Assembly: GCA_044892525.1 (NCBI GenBank) | Contig: CM097886.1 | Coordinates: 78,864,001 to 78,928,000 of the forward strand | Origin: Schmidtea polychroa | Taxonomy: Eukaryota | DNA: 64,000 bases | Reading direction: 5' to 3' | Shown here: piece by piece, positions 3,531-51,785 of the stretch | Layout: every line of letters begins with the position of its first letter | Numbering within the stretch: position 1 is the stretch's first letter | Program-made: the position numbers and the translations under genes | The notes under the pieces: generated by a model | Databases searched by the model: none | Seen by the model: the letters and a program-made list of their open reading frames with translations, nothing else | Told to the model about the DNA's origin: nothing

Positions 3531-3670
3531 NNNNNNNNNNNNNNNNNNNNNNNNNNNNNNNNNNNNNNNNNNNNNNNNNNNNNNNNNNNNNNNNNNNNNN
3601 NNNNNNNNNNNNNNNNNNNNNNNNNNNNNNNNNNNNNNNNNNNNNNNNNNNNNNNNNNNNNNNNNNNNNN
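3531..3670. other. Assembly gap (N run)
   Basis: Run of N. Confidence 1.
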
Positions 3671-15440: not shown

Positions 15441-16247
15441 CACCTAAACCTCGATTTGCCTCGTTAATTGGGACAGTAGAAAGACGACGCAAATCAAAAT
15501 AGTTTATCGTATTTGTTTATACCTTTTTTCATTAATTGGTATCTTGTAGTAAATTTCATGAAAAAAACCAAATTTTATTATTAAAAACATGTTTTATATC
15601 ATAAGTATATGAATATCAACAAAACTATAATTCATTATAAATTAAAACAGTACTTTAAATAAAAAAACTTAAAAAATTATTAAATTAAAACAAAAGTTCG
15701 CTAAATTCATAAAAATTATAATTTCTACATTTGATAATTTTTTAAATCCTTTAATTCATTTTAAACTTAAAGACCTCACATTGTTGCGCATCGTTGCATG
15801 ATTAATCTGTTATGTTTGGTCAAAATAAATTTTATTTTCGGTCTCTAAAAATTTTACATCTTAAAAAATTATTAAAATTTAACAATGCAAATTGAAATTT
15901 TAACGTGTTGTGCCTAAATAAAAATACCAAAATAATTATTAATTTTTAAAATATGTATAAAAATAATAATGAATNNNNNNNNNNNNNNNNNNNNNNNNNN
16001 NNNNNNNNNNNNNNNNNNNNNNNNNNNNNNNNNNNNNNNNNNNNNNNNNNNNNNNNNNNNNNNNNNNNNNNNNNNNNNNNNNNNNNNNNNNNNNNNNNNN
16101 NNNNNNNNNNNNNNNNNNNNNNNNNNNNNNNNNNNNNNNNNNNNNNNNNNNNNNNNNNNNNNNNNNNNNNNNNNNNNTTTTATTAGGCACCACAATTGAA
16201 ATTTTAACGACGCAACTTTGAAAACGACGCAAATTGAGGTTTAGGTG
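15441..16247. mobile_element. TA-flanked MITE spanning an assembly gap
   Basis: TIRs CACCTAAACCTCGATTTGCCTCG / CGACGCAAATTGAGGTTTAGGTG, each flanked by TA. Confidence 0.7.
15975..16177. other. Assembly gap (N run)
   Basis: Run of N. Confidence 1.
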
Positions 16248-17292
16248 TACATACAATATAATTACTTTCTACGGAAGGATAATCAGTTTTCTGATATTAA
16301 TAAATTATATGTCTCCAATGTCTTCCAATAAATATTAAACAATGATGATTCTAATACGGTCAATTTAATAAAAATAAAATTATAAAGCATCTTTTACCTC
16401 ATTTAAAACCATTCAATTTCACTAAAATCTTTAATTTTACATAGATAATATAATAAAAAATGACTACTGAGTTTTAAATTATGACTAAAAATTTAAAAAA
16501 GGAAAATTAACTAATTGTAAAACTTAAAAAAATATAGAATTAATATCTAAATTATTATATTTAATTAATAAATTAGACAATCTATCAAATATTATTGATC
16601 AACATATTGCAATATTAATTTCAAATAAATCCATAGAAATTAAAGCAATAAAAGCAATAAATATGTTTAAATAATAAGATTTTATTTTTTTTAAATAAAT
16701 TATTCAGTTCATTTGAGTTCCCTTTCGATGTTAAACACTGATGATTATAATATTATAATATTGTAAAATATTAAGATTAAATAGTATCCCAAATTTGAGA
16801 TTTGCACACACCCCCTTCTAATTGTTGATTGTTATTTACTTATATTTGATATTAAGCTGTGCATTTTCTTTGCGTATCTTGATGTATATTAATGCATATT
16901 CTGCTGTACCCGTTTCATGATGTATTATCATCCTTTTTCTTTTGTTCGTTACGTGACAGTAAACCCTGCTCAAACTCTTATTGTCGGATAATTGAACTCC
17001 AATTTTGAAAATTTATTGATTTGTACTAAAAGATTGTGATGTAAATCACAAAATGAACCGAAAAAACACAAAATAAAATATATTAATGTTTATGATATAT
17101 TATACTCAAATATCCAAAGTTTATAAATTATAGATAGAATTTAGAAATAAAAAAACTTTCACCAAATAATATCAATGATAGCCATCATGTAAAATTTGCT
17201 TACCTTATAAAACTAGAGAAATTTGAAGCCCAAAGTAAGGTACAAAAAGTGCATTATAAATCATTAAAAATAAATATGCTCAAAGACACGAC

Positions 17293-19747
17293 ATTACTCA
17301 CTAATTGGGAACCATTTCTATGCAGTGCTCACAAATTGGGAACCAGCTCTATGCATTACTCACTAATTGGTAACCATCTCTATGCATTACTCACTAATTA
17401 GTAACCATCTCTGTGCATTATTTGCTAATTGGTAACCATCTCTATGCATTACTCACTAATTAGTAACCATCTCTATGCATTATTTGCTAATTGGGAACCA
17501 TCTCTATGCATTACTCACTAATTAGTAACCATCTCTATGCATTATTTGCTAATTGGGAACCATCTCTATGCATTACTCAATAACTGGGAACAATCTCTGT
17601 GCATTACTCACTAATTGGTAACCATCTCTATGCATTACTCACTAATTGGGAACCATCTCTATATATTACTCACTAATTAGTAACCATCTCTATGCATTAT
17701 TTGCTAATTGGTAACCATCTCTATGCATTATTTGCTAATTGGTAACCATCTCTATGCATTACTCACTAATTAGTAACCATCTCTATGCATTATTTGCTAA
17801 TTGGGAACCATCTCTATGCATTACTCACTAATTAGTAACCATCTCTATGCATTATTTGCTAATTGGGAACCATCTCTATGCATTATTTGCTAATTGGGAA
17901 CCATCTCTATGCATTAGTCACTAATTGGGAACCATCTCTATATATTACTCACTAATTAGTAACCATCTCTATGCATTATTTGCTAATTGGTAACCATCTC
18001 TATGCATTATTTGCTAATTGGTAACCATCTCTATGCATTACTCACTAATTAGTAACCATCTCTATGCATTATTTGCTAATTGGGAACCATCTCTATGCAT
18101 TACTCACTAATTAGTAACCATCTCTATGCATTATTTGCTAATTGGGAACCATCTCTATGCATTATTTGCTAATTGGGAACCATCTCTATGCATTAGTCAC
18201 TAATTGGGAACCATCTCTATATATTACTCACTAATTAGTAACCATCTCTATGCATTATTTGCTAATTGGGAACCATCTCTATGCATTACTCACTAATTGA
18301 GAATCATCTCTATGCAGTGCTCACTAATTGGGAACAATCTCTATGCATTATTTGCTAATTGGGAACCATCTCTATGCATTACTCACTAATTGGTAACCAT
18401 CTCTATGCATTACTCACTAATTAGTAACCATCTCTATGCATTATTTGCTAATTGGTAACCATCTCTATGCATTACTCACTAATTAGTAACCATCTCTATG
18501 CATTATTTGCTAATTGGGAACCATCTCTATGCATTACTCACTAATTAGTAACCATCTCTATGCATTATTTGCTAATTGGGAACCATCTCTATGCATTACT
18601 CACTAATTGAGAATCATCTCTATGCAGTGCTCACTAATTGGGAACAATCTCTATGCATTATTTGCTAATTGGGAACCAGCTCTATGCATTACTCGCTAAT
18701 TGGTAACCATCTCTATGCATTACTCACTAATTAGTAACCATCTCTATGCATTATTTGCTAATTGGTAACCATCTCTATGCATTACTCACTAATTAGTAAC
18801 CATCTCTATGCATTATTTGCTAATTGGGAACCATCTCTATGCATTACTCACTAATTAGTAACCATCTCTATGCATTATTTGCTAATTGGGAACCATCTCT
18901 ATGCATTACTCACTAATTGGGAACCATCTCTATGCATTATTTGCTAATTGGGAACCATCTCTATGCATTACTCACTAATTGGGAACCATCTCTGTGCAGT
19001 ACTCACTAATTGGGAACCATCTCTATGCATTACTCACTAATTGGGAACCATCTCTATGCATTATTTGCTAATTGGGAACCATCTCTATGCATTACTCACT
19101 AATTGGGAACCATCTCTGTGCAGTACTCACTAATTGGGAACCATCTCTATGCATTATTTGCTAATTGGGAACCATCTCTATGCATTAGTCACTAATTGGG
19201 AACAATCTCTATATATTACTCACTAATTGGGAACCATCTCTATGCATTATTTGCTAATTGGGAACCATCTCTATGCATTACTCACTAATTGGGAACCATC
19301 TCTATGCATTATTTGCTAATTGGGAACCATCTCTGTGCAGTACTCACTAATTGGGAACCATCTCTATGCATTATTTGCTAATTGGGAACCATCTCTATGC
19401 ATTAGTCACTAATTGGGAACAATCTCTATATATTACTCACTAATTGGGAACCATCTCTATGCATTATTTGCTAATTGGGAACCATCTCTATGCATTACTC
19501 ACTAATTGGGAACCATCTCTATGCATTATTTGCTAATTGGGAACCATCTCTATGCATTACTCACTAATTGGGAACCATCTCTGTGCAGTACTCACTAATT
19601 GGGAACCATCTCTATGCATTATTTGCTAATTGGGAACCATCTCTATGCATTAGTCACTAATTGGGAACAATCTCTATATATTACTCACTAATTGGGAACC
19701 ATCTATATGCAGTGCTCACTAATTGGGAACAATCTCTGCATTACTCA
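17293..19747. repeat. 31-bp tandem satellite, ~79 copies, with higher-order blocks
   Basis: Consensus CTAATTGGGAACCATCTCTATGCATTA(CTCA/TTTG). Period 31 checked at 18901/18932/18963. Diagnostic variants recur at 310, 279, 217 and 248 bp spacing. Confidence 0.98.
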
Positions 19748-27700: not shown

Positions 27701-30700
27701 ATTCAATTAACACCAAAATCATTAAATAAAATCAAAGAAATTTCTTATTTAAGAAAATATCTTTAAAGCTATTTCTTTTATTTTTTGTCAACAGTAATTA
27801 TTAAATAATTATTAGGAGTAAAATAATCATGGGGAAATGAATGATTTTTGAAAGAAAATGATGTAACAGACTTCCAAAGAGCATGGATGAGAAAAATCAA
27901 AAAATGAGAAAGAAATAACAAATAAAGCAATTAATGAAAAAATGAATAAAGCGTACTTTGAAAAGAAAAATGGTAAACAAAAAAGGAATTTTCTTATCTT
28001 GACAGGTTGTCCGAAATAACGAAATGTTGAAACTACAACCCCAATTAACCCAGATATTTCTCAATTCAATGTCAAAACTATAAAAATCAAAGCTTAAATT
28101 GGAATGGATATAACACAAATATTGATGCAAAAATAGATATTGAAATATTTCGACTGAATTTATAATTGACGAGTGATCTTTTATTAAATGAAAGAGAAGT
28201 TACAAAATCAAATCAAAAAAATCGATCAAAAAACATGGTCTTTGAAACCCTTTCTATATTTCACTCTCTTAATTTTAACATATTTTAAATATAATTATGT
28301 TACTCTTTAATCCGAAGTTTATGAATAGATAAGAATTTATATTGAAATAAAGAAATAACACTAGATTTGACATATCAATATTTTTAAAATTAACACACTT
28401 TCGTGATTGGATCGATCTGAAATTTTGGTAGCATTCTGTGTTCTCGACAACAAATCTACTTGCCAAATTTCAGCTCAATCCGATCACGGAAACTAGGTTA
28501 ATTTGGCTTCACAAAATTTGCGTGGCACATACAAACATACATCAGCGAAGTTAATATAGAGTAAAATGACAATAAAGTTTAACCGTTAATAACCGTGCTA
28601 AGATATTGAATTAAAAGTAGTCGACAATAGAGCTCTATTCCTCACGAAATGTTGTAATAAGCACTAAAATCGTCAAGTTGTTACTAATTTGCTGTGTTTG
28701 TAATAAAGAAAAGAGGAACTGTTACGATAAATGTAAGATTTTCATATTATTTGCTTCATTCCAAGCACTCTTGTAATCAGATTAAAAGTTGTTTATTTTC
28801 TATTTTACCTAGTAACTCCAACAAAACGTTGAAAAATTCCTAAATCTGAGTTATAGGAAATGAGAAAATTCCGGAAAATAATGTAACTAAAATAGCATGT
28901 CTGAATATCCAAAAAATAAAATTTCGTCGTCTCTAAGACAAAATTTGAAATAATATGTCGTTTCATTCACAATTCATCAATAAATGCCATAGAAAACTGA
29001 CATATTCCAAAAATTGCACTTTAATATCACGACAAGTGTAATAATTTCAATAATTCAAAATATTAGCATAAAAATCAAGCGACAATTACTTTTTCTCTAT
29101 TAAGATTCTCAACTGATTTCTAGAAAATAAAATAATTCCATGTTGGAGAAAATATTTAGAAAATTTTCTATCATCCAATGATTTATCAAAATTAAATTTT
29201 CAATTCTGCATATTTTCATTCAAAAATTTCTTATCAAGAATTTCTAGATAAGAAATTTTTGAATGGAAAATTAATTTATAGGAAATTTTCTAAATATTTT
29301 ATCCAAATTATAATTTATTTTGTTGTTTTAGAAATCATACTAGTAAAAAGACAATTTTATGAATGTCAAAAATTGAATATATTTTTAAAAAATCGAAAAA
29401 TAGCATCTATATAGTAATCTGTGATTATATTCATTCACCATTATGTCTTTGTATCAGGCGCGTAGACCGAGATAGAACTGGGGAATAAATTCCCAATTTC
29501 CGAAGAAAAAAGAAGAATATAAAAAATCATTGCAATAACAATATCAATATCACAATTTTCAATCCTTAGTATTTGTAACAGATTTGTTATTTTTCAGTTT
29601 CAAAGTGTCTTTTATATTTTGAACGCTATCAACTTTGTTATGCAAAAATAGTTCTAATTTGTTTTCGTTCTCAAGCATTGAAAATTTTATTTGTAAAGCA
29701 AATTATTTAAAATCCTTTTAATCGTTTCAAAAACTTCATTTAAGGAAACAATGAAAATGAAACATTAATAAACAAGATGGCTGGGAATTTTTTATCAGCA
29801 GATGTAGCAAATTTCTTAAAATAGAAATTACGTGACACAGTGATTCCAGTTACAGCAGCAGAAGTGGAGCGTTCCTTTTTAGCAAAATGAAGCAAGTCAA
29901 AAATAATGACCGAAACACAACAAGGAAAGAAGACAGAACGGACTGATGTTTTTAAGTTTTCATCGAGAAATTTCGATATCCTTAATTGAGTTTGTAACAA
30001 AGTTCCGCAAAGGAAAAAATCCGATGATTGTAAAGCAAAAATTTAAAAACATTCCAAACACACGTGCTCACAGAATTTTGCACATTGATTTCCGGATCCA
30101 ATGAAATATGGCTCAAGGATTGATTGATAATTTGGTTGAGTTGTTAATAAAGAATGGCTATTTAAATTCATTTCTATTAAGGATGATAAAAGAGACTGTT
30201 GATAGATTTGTTAAGCATCCTAACGATTCATGTTTAGGTGTAATTTATCTTGTGTGTGTAAATCGGATGGTAATTAACATTAATAATGTGTGAAAGAATG
30301 ATGTTTTTTCCTTCCCATATTACAGGTATTGTTCTAAGTATCTCAATCGATTTTACTTTTATGGCTTCAGTAAACTTAAAACTATAGCCAAAAAATGACA
30401 AAATTCACATTGTTAATAGGATTTGTGGAGTGTTTTGTCAAAAGATAAAATGTTAAAATGTCTAGTGTATAACCGTTTGACATGAACCAAATGATGTTCC
30501 AGTAGATTAAGTAACATTTCAAATAGTCAATCGACAATCAGTAATCAATAAATATTTGATTTCGGTGATTTGATTCTCATTAATTGATGTTTTGTATGTA
30601 CCACGATGCATCTTATTATGTCAATCAGATTTCTGTCTTTGATAGAATTTCTGTATCATTTTAAGTGTTTTTGATGCGTTTATTTGATTAATTCATTATA

Positions 30701-33700
30701 AAAATCGAAAAAGTTAAAAAGTACCGTAATAGCAGTGAAAATCTAAGAATGGTAAATTACGGTTAATATAATGCAAGCGCCTATTTTAAGACATATTCCG
30801 AAAACTTCTTGATCTCAGAAGTATACTGTATTTTTCGAACCATAATATACAATTGTGGTGCATCTTATCGTCCGAAGGTAACAAAAGGCACCATATCAAT
30901 GGGTCACGAAAAAACTCATTACTCAGTAGTTTTTGCTTGTCGCACGAACAGAAGAAAACTAGCTATTGTGTTAATCTTCAAAAGTACGTTATCGAAAAAT
31001 AGAATTCCTAGTGGCATTATTATCCATGTTCAAGAAAGAGGCTGGATGGAGGAAACAGGAATGAAATGTTGGAGACAAAAGATATATGCAAAAAGGCTAC
31101 GATGTTAGTGTGAAACCATCTATATGAATTACTAATTAGTTGGGAACCATCTCTATGCAATACTTGCAAATTGGGAACAATCTCTATGTATTATTCGCTA
31201 ATTGGGAACCATCTCTATGCATTATTCGCTAATTGAGAACCATCTTTATTGATTACTCATTAATTGGGAACCATCTCTATGCAGTACTTACTAATTGGGA
31301 ACAATCTCTATGCATTACTCACTAATTGGGAATCATTTCTACGCATTACTCACTAATTGGGAACCATCTCCATGCATTACTTGCAAATTGGGCACCATCT
31401 TTATGCAATATTCGCAAATTGGGAATGAATACAGAATTATCTATCATTCCTGGAGGCCTCACAAGTCTATTGCAATATTTGGATGTATTTATCAATAAAC
31501 CATTTAAACATCTTATGTACTAAGAGTGGGAAATGGATGACAAAAGCCAAATTACGATGTCACTACAATAAGTATGAAACGACAAATAATCTCAGAAGTT
31601 TGTACTTGGATAAAAAAAAAATCACGAAAAGCTGTGGAAGAAGTGATGATTATAAAGTAATTTAAGAAATGTGAAATAACTAATGCAATGGATGGTATTG
31701 AAGATGAAGTCGTTTTTGAAGGAGTGACAACAATTGTTCAGAAGAAAGTCCTATGAAATGTGACATTGTATGGAGAGTGAATTGGGTTTTATTGTCCTGT
31801 TTCTATCACCATAATTTTATAATGCCCATAATTATATGAAACATCCTAAAATTATGAACTCATTCAAAAAATTACATTCGCATTAATTATGAAAATGACA
31901 GTGACTAAGATGATTTCTAAATATTAATTAATGAGATAATTTCCTCTCAATTAATTAATAGAAATCTGAAAAATCAGAAGAATGTGTAGGAGAGATTAAT
32001 CAATTAGCACTGACGACATGGAAATCAGCACATTTATCAAACAGTTTCCCTAATTGTGTGCATCAGAGAAATTTGTGCATGAAATATGCAATACAGCTTG
32101 AATTTATTCTATTACAAATCTCAGATTCTTTTATTTTGAAATAAGTTTGTTTATATTGTGTATGCAGTCGTCTTTGATAAATATTTGAATGATGATATCA
32201 AAACGCTTAAAATCTATGAAAATGGATTCGAAATAATTTCACAATTTCACTAATCGAATATAACAATACGGATGAATTCTGTTTTCAAATGAAATACTGA
32301 ATATAAAAGCTTCTATTTTGATTTTTAAATGACAAAACAAAACTTATCGAATTAATTTTCTTTCGTAAATTTTTTCATTTCATTAACGGGTTTAAAAAAA
32401 TCGTAGAGAATATTTGATTTTAAATTTAAAATTGTTCTTATATTGATTAAATATTCGTTGGTCAGTATACTTATTTTGGTAAATGTTACTTTTAAATGTT
32501 CTCTTAAAATGTTCTTTTAAATGTTTCCTATAAATGTTTCTTTAAAATGTTCCCTTAAAATGCTCCTTTAAACTGTTATCTTTAAATGTTTCTTTAAAAT
32601 GTTCCTTTAAATGTTCTCTTTATATGTTCCTTTAAATGTTTCTTTAAAATGCTCCTTTAAACTGTTATCTTTAAATGTTCCTATAAATGTTTCTTAAACT
32701 GTTCCCTTTAAATGTTCCATTAAAATGTACCTTTAAAATGTTCTTTTAAATGTTCCCTTTAAATGTTTCCTTAAAATGCTCCTCTAAACTGTTCTCTTTA
32801 AATGTTCTCTTTAAATGTGCTCTTTAAATGCTCCCTTTAAATGCTCTTTTAAACTGTTCCCTTTAAATGTTCCTTTAAAATGCTCCTTTAAAAGTTCTGC
32901 AATATCTGTGACGACTAAGCGGGAATTTCATCATCGATTATTTTTCGAAATTTTAATATTATAAGAATTAATTTTTATTGAAAGTCTTAAAAAATGGATT
33001 GATTTTGATAATGATCAATTCCTCCACTCAAATATTCGAATAAGGCTTTACTAAAGCAATTTTAGTGTGCTCCCACTCCCTCCTCTCCTTCCCCTCCCCT
33101 CCGTTTCCATTCCAACAAGAGGAACTCATTTTTATTTTAAATAACGAATAAATAAATAAACTTTTTATATAATGTTTTGTATGCACAAACTATGATGTGT
33201 TTTTATAGATTTATAATGCATTTATTTGAACCCGAAACTGTGGTTTTTATAACGCCAATAAATCTCAAAATAAAAATGAATGTTTACCACTTGTTAAAAT
33301 AATTATGCTGTAGAAAGAACGAATAATGAGTTACGGGCTGTATTGAACCAAGCACAAAAGGAAATATAAAATCTACCGATATTACTTCTTGAACTGCCTA
33401 GAACTTTCGAAGTACCCTTTGTGTTTCACACATTGCAACGGTAATTTCTATAATTTAGTTATTCATTGTTTCAATCGGTTTGATTGAATGATTTCTCATA
33501 CATTGGTCCCACACAGTGACAGATCATTAAACTGGGGGCAGGGGGAGGGGCGATAAGGAAATACAATAGTTTTTCATATATATTTTTTAATTGTGCTGCC
33601 CTTTATTTCTGCTTTATAAGAAAAATGACATTTCATCAAAAACGTTCAACTGATAATGCCATAAAAACATTAGATAGTTTAGTTTTTTAGACCAATAAGG

Positions 33701-50468: not shown

Positions 50469-51785
50469 CGGTGGCGTAACAAGCATAACTGGCGCCTGTG
50501 GCACGATACTTGAAATTCTTTTTAAAAAATTTGCACCTAAAAATCAATAAATGCACTTTTAAATAAAAAAAATTAATAATCAATAAACGTGAAAGTTGAT
50601 AATGCGACTTGACCTTAAAGGGAGATGGCCTCTGTCGCTAATCAGCGCGTGGTAACTAATGGTGGCTTCTATAGTGTGCTATACGGTTTAAATAAGGACA
50701 GCCTCGTGTTAGGCTTTAAATTGTACTACATTTATTTTGAAATATGTGGAATTCAGGAATAATCATTTCGATATTATTATTGGAATTTAAAGTAGCAACA
50801 TTTTGAAATCCAGTACGTCAGAAATTACAATGAGTGTTTCTATTGCATTTTCTGTAGTTTTCGTTTAAAAAAATAAAAATATGTCATTAGTTTAGAAAAA
50901 TAAAGTGTTGAGAAAGAAAGAAGAAAGAACGCTTTATATACGAAGATGTTTGATTGATTTACTACAAACATATTTTATCAGACAAATCAATAAAGAAAGT
51001 AATTAATTACGGCATTACTTCGAATATAAGCAGTACTTTTTACTTATATTTTTAATATGCAAAATTAAGGTAAGGCTTATGTTCGGAGTAATAAACAATT
51101 TATTCGTATTCGAGAAATAGAAACAGTATTATATCTGTTTCCACTTTTAGAAAGGTTAAAGCCTTTGTAGTGAAAATTTAAAAAAACTGATGTATATATT
51201 AATGTAGTTCCTACCCAAATGTTTTGATTTTCTAATTCGGTAGATGTTTGACTTCAGTCGTGTTTCATCGTGTTTTTTTTATTTATTATCGATTATATTA
51301 TGAATAAGCGCTTCACGTATTATGATGAATTCAAAAGAAAAGTTATTTTGGTGCCTAAAAAATTGGAAATCGCGCAGCCGGTAAAAGATTTATTGTCGGC
51401 GAAAAGAATGTGCGTCGATGGAGAGGAAGAGAAAAGAAAAATTATTTTAATGTAAAATACACAGGAAATCTTTCTAGGGGGCTTATAAACGGAAGGTATC
51501 ATACAATTTGCGCAACTGTCTGCTTTTATGTGATGGAATTACGAAGTGACAAGGGACTCAGTTATGGTTAAAGCTAGAGAGTTATCCTATTTAAAATACC
51601 TATCATAAAACCTCCTGTAGATTAAATTCGAGGGTGGCTTTTATTTGAAGTAATACGGTATATTACAATAACTATTAATTTATATAATATATTTCCCAAA
51701 AATCGACTGAAATAAAAATTGAAATTTTCCAAAAATTCTTGTTTTAGGGAACTTTTTGGTTCCTGCCCTCCTCGCTACGCCACTG
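50469..51785. mobile_element. hAT non-autonomous element with nested pogo
   Basis: TIRs CGGTGGCGTAAC / GCTACGCCACTG. TSD atcattta / atcatata (7/8). Confidence 0.75.
51010..51658 (+). mobile_element. pogo (POGK-like) deletion derivative with HTH remnant
   Basis: TIR-like CGGCATTACTTCGAATATAAG / CTTTTATTTGAAGTAATACGG with TA flanks. RFTYYDEFKRKVIL...NVRRWR...MVKAREL. Confidence 0.7.

Follow-up and report, generated by a model that had tools for sequence, protein, structure and literature searches.

In the window analysed here (the whole stretch of DNA, 64,000 nucleotides in length, of which the N stretches at 3531-3670 and 15975-16177 lay outside the analysis), the remains of a pogo/Tigger-type transposase are interrupted by a short array of tandemly repeated 31-bp units. 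The transposase is missing about 31 codons (about 93 nt), the second catalytic Asp among them, and an 11-nt partial unit plus ten 31-bp units occupy the gap. The same monomer recurs in a second array of 2.4 kb, located 13.8 kb upstream, and this larger array is probably the daughter of the embedded one, judging by a short piece of transposase coding sequence that appears to have travelled with the repeat. We consider it somewhat better than an even chance (a probability of roughly 0.55) that the repeat was born in situ within the relic and was subsequently copied upstream and amplified.

The sequences on both sides of the embedded array are pieces of a pogo/Tigger-type transposase with a DDE_1 domain (Pfam PF03184). 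The left piece (30896-31102, + strand; ...GHEKTH...GWMEETGMKCWRQKIYAKR) was recognised by tblastn with five relatives (in which it ends at 31096), by BLASTP, and by Pfam, and it belongs to a reading frame that is open from 30767 (30767-31105) and closes with a stop at 31106. Its BLASTP match to P0004, a 450-aa protein with BrkDBD, HTH_Tnp_Tc5, and DDE_1 domains that itself reaches 102.5 bits on DDE_1, has an E-value of 5e-21 at 43 % identity. The right piece (31425-31520, + strand; MNTELSIIPGGLTSLLQYLDVFINKPFK), identified by tblastn and Pfam, keeps the third catalytic Asp motif as QYLD (31473-31484), stands in the +1 frame relative to the left piece, and runs into a stop at 31521. A C-terminal part (31565-31720, + strand; ...FKKCEITNAMDGIEDEVVFEG), found by tblastn to P0004, P0042, and P0060, is in yet another frame and contains an internal stop at 31658. 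With the five relatives, tblastn placed the pieces at 30896-31096, 31416-31535, and 31565-31720, and it returned no further copy of the relic within the window. On the DDE_1 profile, the left piece covers positions 9-71 and the right piece positions 100-128, with scores of 18.5 and 13.5 bits, respectively, each of which taken alone is below the 22-bit cut-off. Judged by this homology, the relic is a member of the pogo/Tigger-type DDE_1 family.

A complete catalytic D-D-D triad is absent, as the array stands in for the segment of the second Asp. Nor can the first Asp motif (NMDET in relatives) be recognised, the open reading frame having NCGAS there, and BLAST alignments begin only at GHEKTH. 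Furthermore, tblastn revealed nothing beside the relic upstream of 30893 that would correspond to the N-terminal ~200 residues, which carry the BrkDBD/HTH and HTH_Tnp_Tc5 domains in full-length relatives. By its sequence, the element is a 5'-truncated relic and not an active member of the family. At a likeness threshold of 80 %, the Logan contigs of four runs from the organism cover the pogo flanks at single-copy depth only, which indicates that the relic is a single copy with no near copy (≥80 % identity) for comparison. In a representative protein search, the relatives are only 40-55 % identical, and neither a word-based search nor an exact-protein look-up of the open reading frame from the window returned a closer pogo-family protein.

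Several observations were made in the surroundings of the relic. The most conserved C-terminal part (31637-31749) is matched by several other contigs of the organism at ~85 % identity (16-17 differences in 113 nt), and these matches show that diverged pogo-family members exist elsewhere in the genome. At 51365-51481, a weak tblastn match (E=0.005) to the DNA-binding N-terminus of pogo relatives, at residues 29-56 of P0041, may represent a separate pogo fragment. Just upstream of the relic, at 30594-30647, one contig per run in all four runs swaps 52 nt for 103 other letters at ~30-50 % of the local word depth, which reflects a structural variant or else a paralogous copy of a repeat; the stretches 30522-30594, 30647-30691, and 30728-30774 likewise match other contigs. 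In addition, a second, unrelated tandem array is located at 32480-32898, 0.8 kb downstream of the relic, with periods of 13, 26, and 51, a unit of approximately TAAATGTTCCTTT, and 75-79 % matches.

The site of the interruption can be defined by comparison with 22 relatives that span it. In these proteins, the interval from ...VWxxR to NTxxAVIPGG measures ~31 columns and holds [SA]LLV[WLMF]D, that is, the second catalytic Asp. A first, sequence-only reading of this DNA had proposed that the array occupies exactly this site and that the gap in relatives amounts to about 30 aa with the Asp motif inside; both proposals are borne out by the break between DDE_1 positions 71 and 100, the arrangement of the tblastn pieces, and the alignment of the 22 relatives. 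The same reading had counted about ten diverged 31-bp copies between the pogo segments. Tandem Repeats Finder reports a period-31 repeat at 31114-31425 (10.1 copies, 81 % matches), and the in-register layout yields exactly ten 31-bp units at 31114-31423 (+ strand) with zero indels. Each unit matches the consensus at 25-30 of its 31 positions, and all ten monomers differ from one another. The 31 nt adjoining the array on either side match the consensus at only 9/31 positions, so both edges are sharp. Across the 64-kb window, a search with the consensus at ≤3 mismatches returned 69 matches against none expected, all of them within the two arrays and on the same strand.

Unit 1 is preceded by 11 nt (31103-31113, + strand; TGTTAGTGTGA) that are in phase with it and are best read as the worn tail of a partial monomer (TGCTAATTGGG, 7/11). 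As the 25-mer 31103-31127 aligns ungapped at 18/25 positions to the large-array segment TGCTAATTGGGAACCATCTCTATGC, with no closer source in the window, these 11 nt look less like pogo codons than like part of a worn unit. Counted from 31103, the length of the embedded array corresponds to a non-integral number of units. A proto-monomer was not found elsewhere in the 64 kb, where the best match (21/31) is at chance level. Within the retained pogo pieces, the best candidate is CATTACTCAGTAGTT (30917-30931, left piece), which agrees with the monomer core CATTACTCACTAATT at 13/15 positions; at p=0.08 for the 207-nt piece, the similarity is not significant, and the comparison of the monomer with the retained pogo parts gave p values of 0.08 and 0.48. 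A CENP-B-box-like motif, which might have tied the monomer to the pogo-derived CENP-B, has no match in either array.

The sequence-only reading went one step further and derived the monomer itself from the transposase: slippage would have duplicated the codons around its second catalytic Asp (KPSLLVWD), which were held to be still legible in the first unit. If this were so, the 31-bp unit would be a remnant of the relic's own active-site codons. We regard this origin as unlikely, even though the position of the array is right for it and the native codons would be the natural seed of a repeat born in situ. The two strings on which the proposal was built do exist: AAACCATCT (K-P-S) is found at 31113-31121, starting 16 nt past the conserved Arg codon and within ~2 nt of the place of the relatives' residues before LLVxD, and TTAGTTGGGAAC (L-V-G-N) is found at 31136-31147. 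Also in its favour, one frame of the consensus reads A-L-L-T-N-W-E, which is loosely like [SA]LLVWD, and the BLAST alignment of one relative continues for 18 codons within the last units. However, K-P-S is shifted by one frame against the left pogo piece, L-V-G-N is not in frame with K-P-S, and 14 nt separate the two, as opposed to the 3 that the motif permits. A Pro in the triplet before LLV occurs in only 2 of the 22 relatives.

Three similarity tests gave no support beyond chance. A profile HMM of the gap region, built from the 22 relatives, did not report the consensus monomer and scored the frames of the array at null level. A Smith-Waterman comparison of the periodic peptide of the monomer with the 22 gap regions reached a score of 19, as compared to a mean of 22.4 for random genomic 31-mers, 87 % of which did equally well or better. 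A frameshift-tolerant profile-to-DNA alignment, in which array units could be jumped over freely, scored 78.9 bits versus 79.1 +/- 3.2 for null arrays with permuted columns, 49 % of which reached the real score. The power of such similarity tests is low: in simulations, a true origin was detected in 47 %, 21 %, and 10 % of cases at 10 %, 20 %, and 30 % decay, respectively, and the null results consequently remove support from a codon origin without refuting it. A further point against it comes from the flanks. After a plain tandem duplication, ~62 nt of native sequence should still flank the array, yet only ≤17 nt (left) and 0-4 nt (right) are present, and the slippage model would require a frameshift, 11 surplus nt within the motif, and 40-55 nt of additional loss. 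The derivation from KPSLLVWD codons is accordingly unproven, not refuted. The array may or may not be what inactivated the transposase, as the same reading proposed, for the relic has also lost its N-terminal half, has no recognisable motif around the first Asp, and bears additional stops and changes of frame.

The K-P-S letters, moreover, fall within a 25-nt stretch (31101-31125, + strand) that is polymorphic and resembles a diverged partial monomer, which also speaks against their being preserved transposase codons. In run X2, another sample of the same organism, these 25 nt are missing at 31101 at a depth of 46.2 of 46.2, as seen in the one X2 contig that crosses the junction (record 12, spanning 30999-31288). 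With the 25 nt removed, the junction becomes colinear with that of the large array through the flank, the partial unit, and the first full unit (score of 39 versus 16 for the reference allele), and its phase agrees with the large array to within 1 nt, while the reference allele is out of phase. The 25 nt nevertheless appear old and have no donor within 7 mismatches, although the X2-like junction is the colinear one. These conflicting signs on the polarity of the indel, together with the non-integral unit count from 31103, suggest that at least one array edge has been reworked.

The large array (17292-19747, + strand), delimited by Tandem Repeats Finder and the consensus search, comprises 78 full units plus edges, shows higher-order periods of 62 and 93, and contains many identical units. 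Its consensus is identical to that of the embedded array. What links the two arrays beyond the monomer is the non-satellite sequence that abuts both of them, each time on the left and in identical orientation. Directly left of the embedded array, the junction flank at 31077-31102 (+ strand) consists of the pogo codons (Q)KIYAKRLR, and the 25 nt directly left of the large array (17267-17291, + strand) match it at 20/26 aligned positions; this homology between putative parent and daughter extends over 26 nt and is confined to the left side. When the 40-nt left flanks of both arrays are aligned locally, the score is 13, which is equalled by 0.1 % of all 40-mers of the window (p about 0.001), and of 5969 random segments aligned with the junction as anchor, none scores as high. 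No homology was detected between the right flanks, and permissive blastn for longer flank homology gave AT-rich noise only.

A similarity of this size could conceivably be a coincidence, in which case the two arrays would be independent, or the large array would be the older one and the donor to the relic. The match is limited to 20 of 26 positions, its sequence context is rich in A, a few other places in the window that are likewise A-rich (five among the matches listed) score equally well against the pogo flank, and the right flanks are unrelated. On the other hand, the p of about 0.001 applies to the one relevant flank, which is on the same side, has the same orientation, and ends at the array. 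The two versions also differ in character: the pogo flank encodes QKIYAKR in frame and gains +11.0 bits on columns 13-19 of the relatives' profile, a level reached by random in-frame genomic 21-mers at a frequency of 1e-5, whereas the corresponding letters beside the large array reach only -3.8 bits and read as random. This difference argues that the flank is native to the pogo element and was carried to the large array, and not the reverse. An older large array is further at odds with its lower diversity, which is consistent with amplification from few founders. Overall, we consider chance flank similarity, or a transfer in the opposite direction, to be quite improbable.

The variation among monomers points in the same direction as the flank. 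The small array has 22 variant letters, and 11 of them recur in the large array, as compared to 4.7 expected (p=0.0006). Differences per 31 positions amount to 5.96 within the embedded array, 4.94 between the arrays, and 3.46 within the large array, and the embedded array holds the intermediates CTA, CTG, and TCG between the main types of the large array, CCA and TTG. By these patterns, the large array appears to have been amplified from few founder types. The earlier proposal that the embedded array seeded the 2.4-kb array agrees well with the pogo-derived left flank, its fit to the transposase profile, and the greater diversity and intermediates of the embedded array, which is probably the parent on this evidence. 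As a separate observation, RNA-labelled runs hold words of the large array (a share of 0.31 in X12 and of 0.07-0.11 in X13-X15), and the large array may be transcribed, for example, within an intron.

The distribution of the repeat bears on where it came from. The commonest monomer words have a summed contig depth of ~78x single-copy in X1 and ~60x in X3, values near the window's 88 units, though word depths in Logan contigs are not copy numbers and are indicative only. The only array flanks among the loose ends listed are those of the large array, and the repeat was found only in runs labelled organism A. This suggests that the two arrays hold nearly all copies of the repeat in the organism, with a third, small array being possible, and birth at the pogo site is favoured by this locality. 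A rather unlikely, yet coherent, alternative is that the repeat was born elsewhere and imported, for instance, when a break in the relic was repaired from a lost or unseen array and ~93 nt of pogo sequence were deleted (deletion plus filler). The loss of native and gain of foreign sequence, the sharp edges, and the non-integral unit count would all suit such templated repair, and the monomer shows no similarity to pogo beyond chance in the tests run. Against an import stand the lack of a visible donor, the contig depths that suit the two arrays of the window, and the restriction of the repeat to organism A; the sole other array, moreover, bears a pogo-derived flank, which makes it a daughter and not a donor.

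With the repeat family being local and its oldest traceable seat lying inside the relic, birth at the pogo spot is favoured, and we infer a history along the following lines. An old, single-copy, and already decaying pogo relic would have lost most of the segment around the second catalytic Asp, and the array would post-date the death of the element. About 31 nt at the site, which may have been decayed pogo sequence or repair filler from the deletion, would then have been tandemly duplicated and expanded by unequal exchange. Later, at least 25 nt of the pogo flank together with several monomers of at least two variant types would have been copied 13.8 kb upstream, presumably by templated break repair or template switching, and this copy would have been amplified into higher-order repeats from few founder types. 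The extra loss of 40-55 nt that a birth in situ requires counts against this history. The process as a whole is neutral repeat turnover in a dead transposon and implies no function.

It is well documented that tandem repeats and satellites may arise from transposable elements or reside within them (PMC6947457; PMC9659126; PMC3879986), one example being the MITE DTC84 with its central repeats (PMC3879986). The present locus resembles such cases in having a short array inside a transposon and a larger daughter outside of it, and in the combination of slippage and unequal exchange. In a tabulated overview, satellites derived from coding sequence originate from LINE-1 ORF2 and CR1 ORF2, and the DNA-transposon sources are TIRs, UTRs, and MITE cores (PMC9659126). 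Unlike the latter, the array described here is located within the catalytic domain of a transposase, and the origin of its monomer from the element is only a candidate. It also differs from repeat-carrying transposable elements in that the element is a single-copy relic that does not spread the repeats through the genome.

Internal-deletion derivatives of cut-and-paste transposons such as P, Ac/Ds, hobo, and mariner carry filler DNA that stems from abortive gap repair. As in these derivatives, an internal segment of the transposase is replaced by unrelated sequence with sharp junctions; in contrast to them, the filler is a tandem array without a known donor, and the event may long post-date the activity of the element.

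For the spread to the second locus, the closest parallel is provided by the Rsp-like/1.688 satellites of Drosophila simulans and D. mauritiana, in which one junction, joining a truncated monomer to non-satellite sequence, is present again at another locus, and this recurring hybrid junction unit was taken as the seed of a new cluster via template-switch repair, interlocus conversion, or circular DNA (PMC7403614). The junction described above is likewise shared with a second locus, but only two loci are involved, 13.8 kb apart, and the flank that travelled along is transposase coding sequence and not another satellite. Satellite spread in gene-rich regions is also described for Tribolium (PMC11610590). 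The locus is, in this sense, a small and clean instance of a repeat associated with a transposable element and of spread through a shared junction, i. e., of a type of event that is already known, and it leaves the knowledge of transposons or satellites unchanged.

Should the 31-bp unit after all turn out to be a codon remnant, the locus would record base pair by base pair how a tandem repeat arose from the active site of a transposase, together with its first daughter array and the piece of transposase still attached to it, and the catalytic domain of a DNA transposase would join the coding sequences known to have given rise to satellites. Independent of this, few satellite families can be traced to their first locus, and here ~90 units in two arrays are at hand, the parent-daughter relation of which is legible from 25-26 nt of transposase coding sequence that travelled with the repeat. 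The locus illustrates in compact form how a local repeat array may seed a second, larger one nearby.
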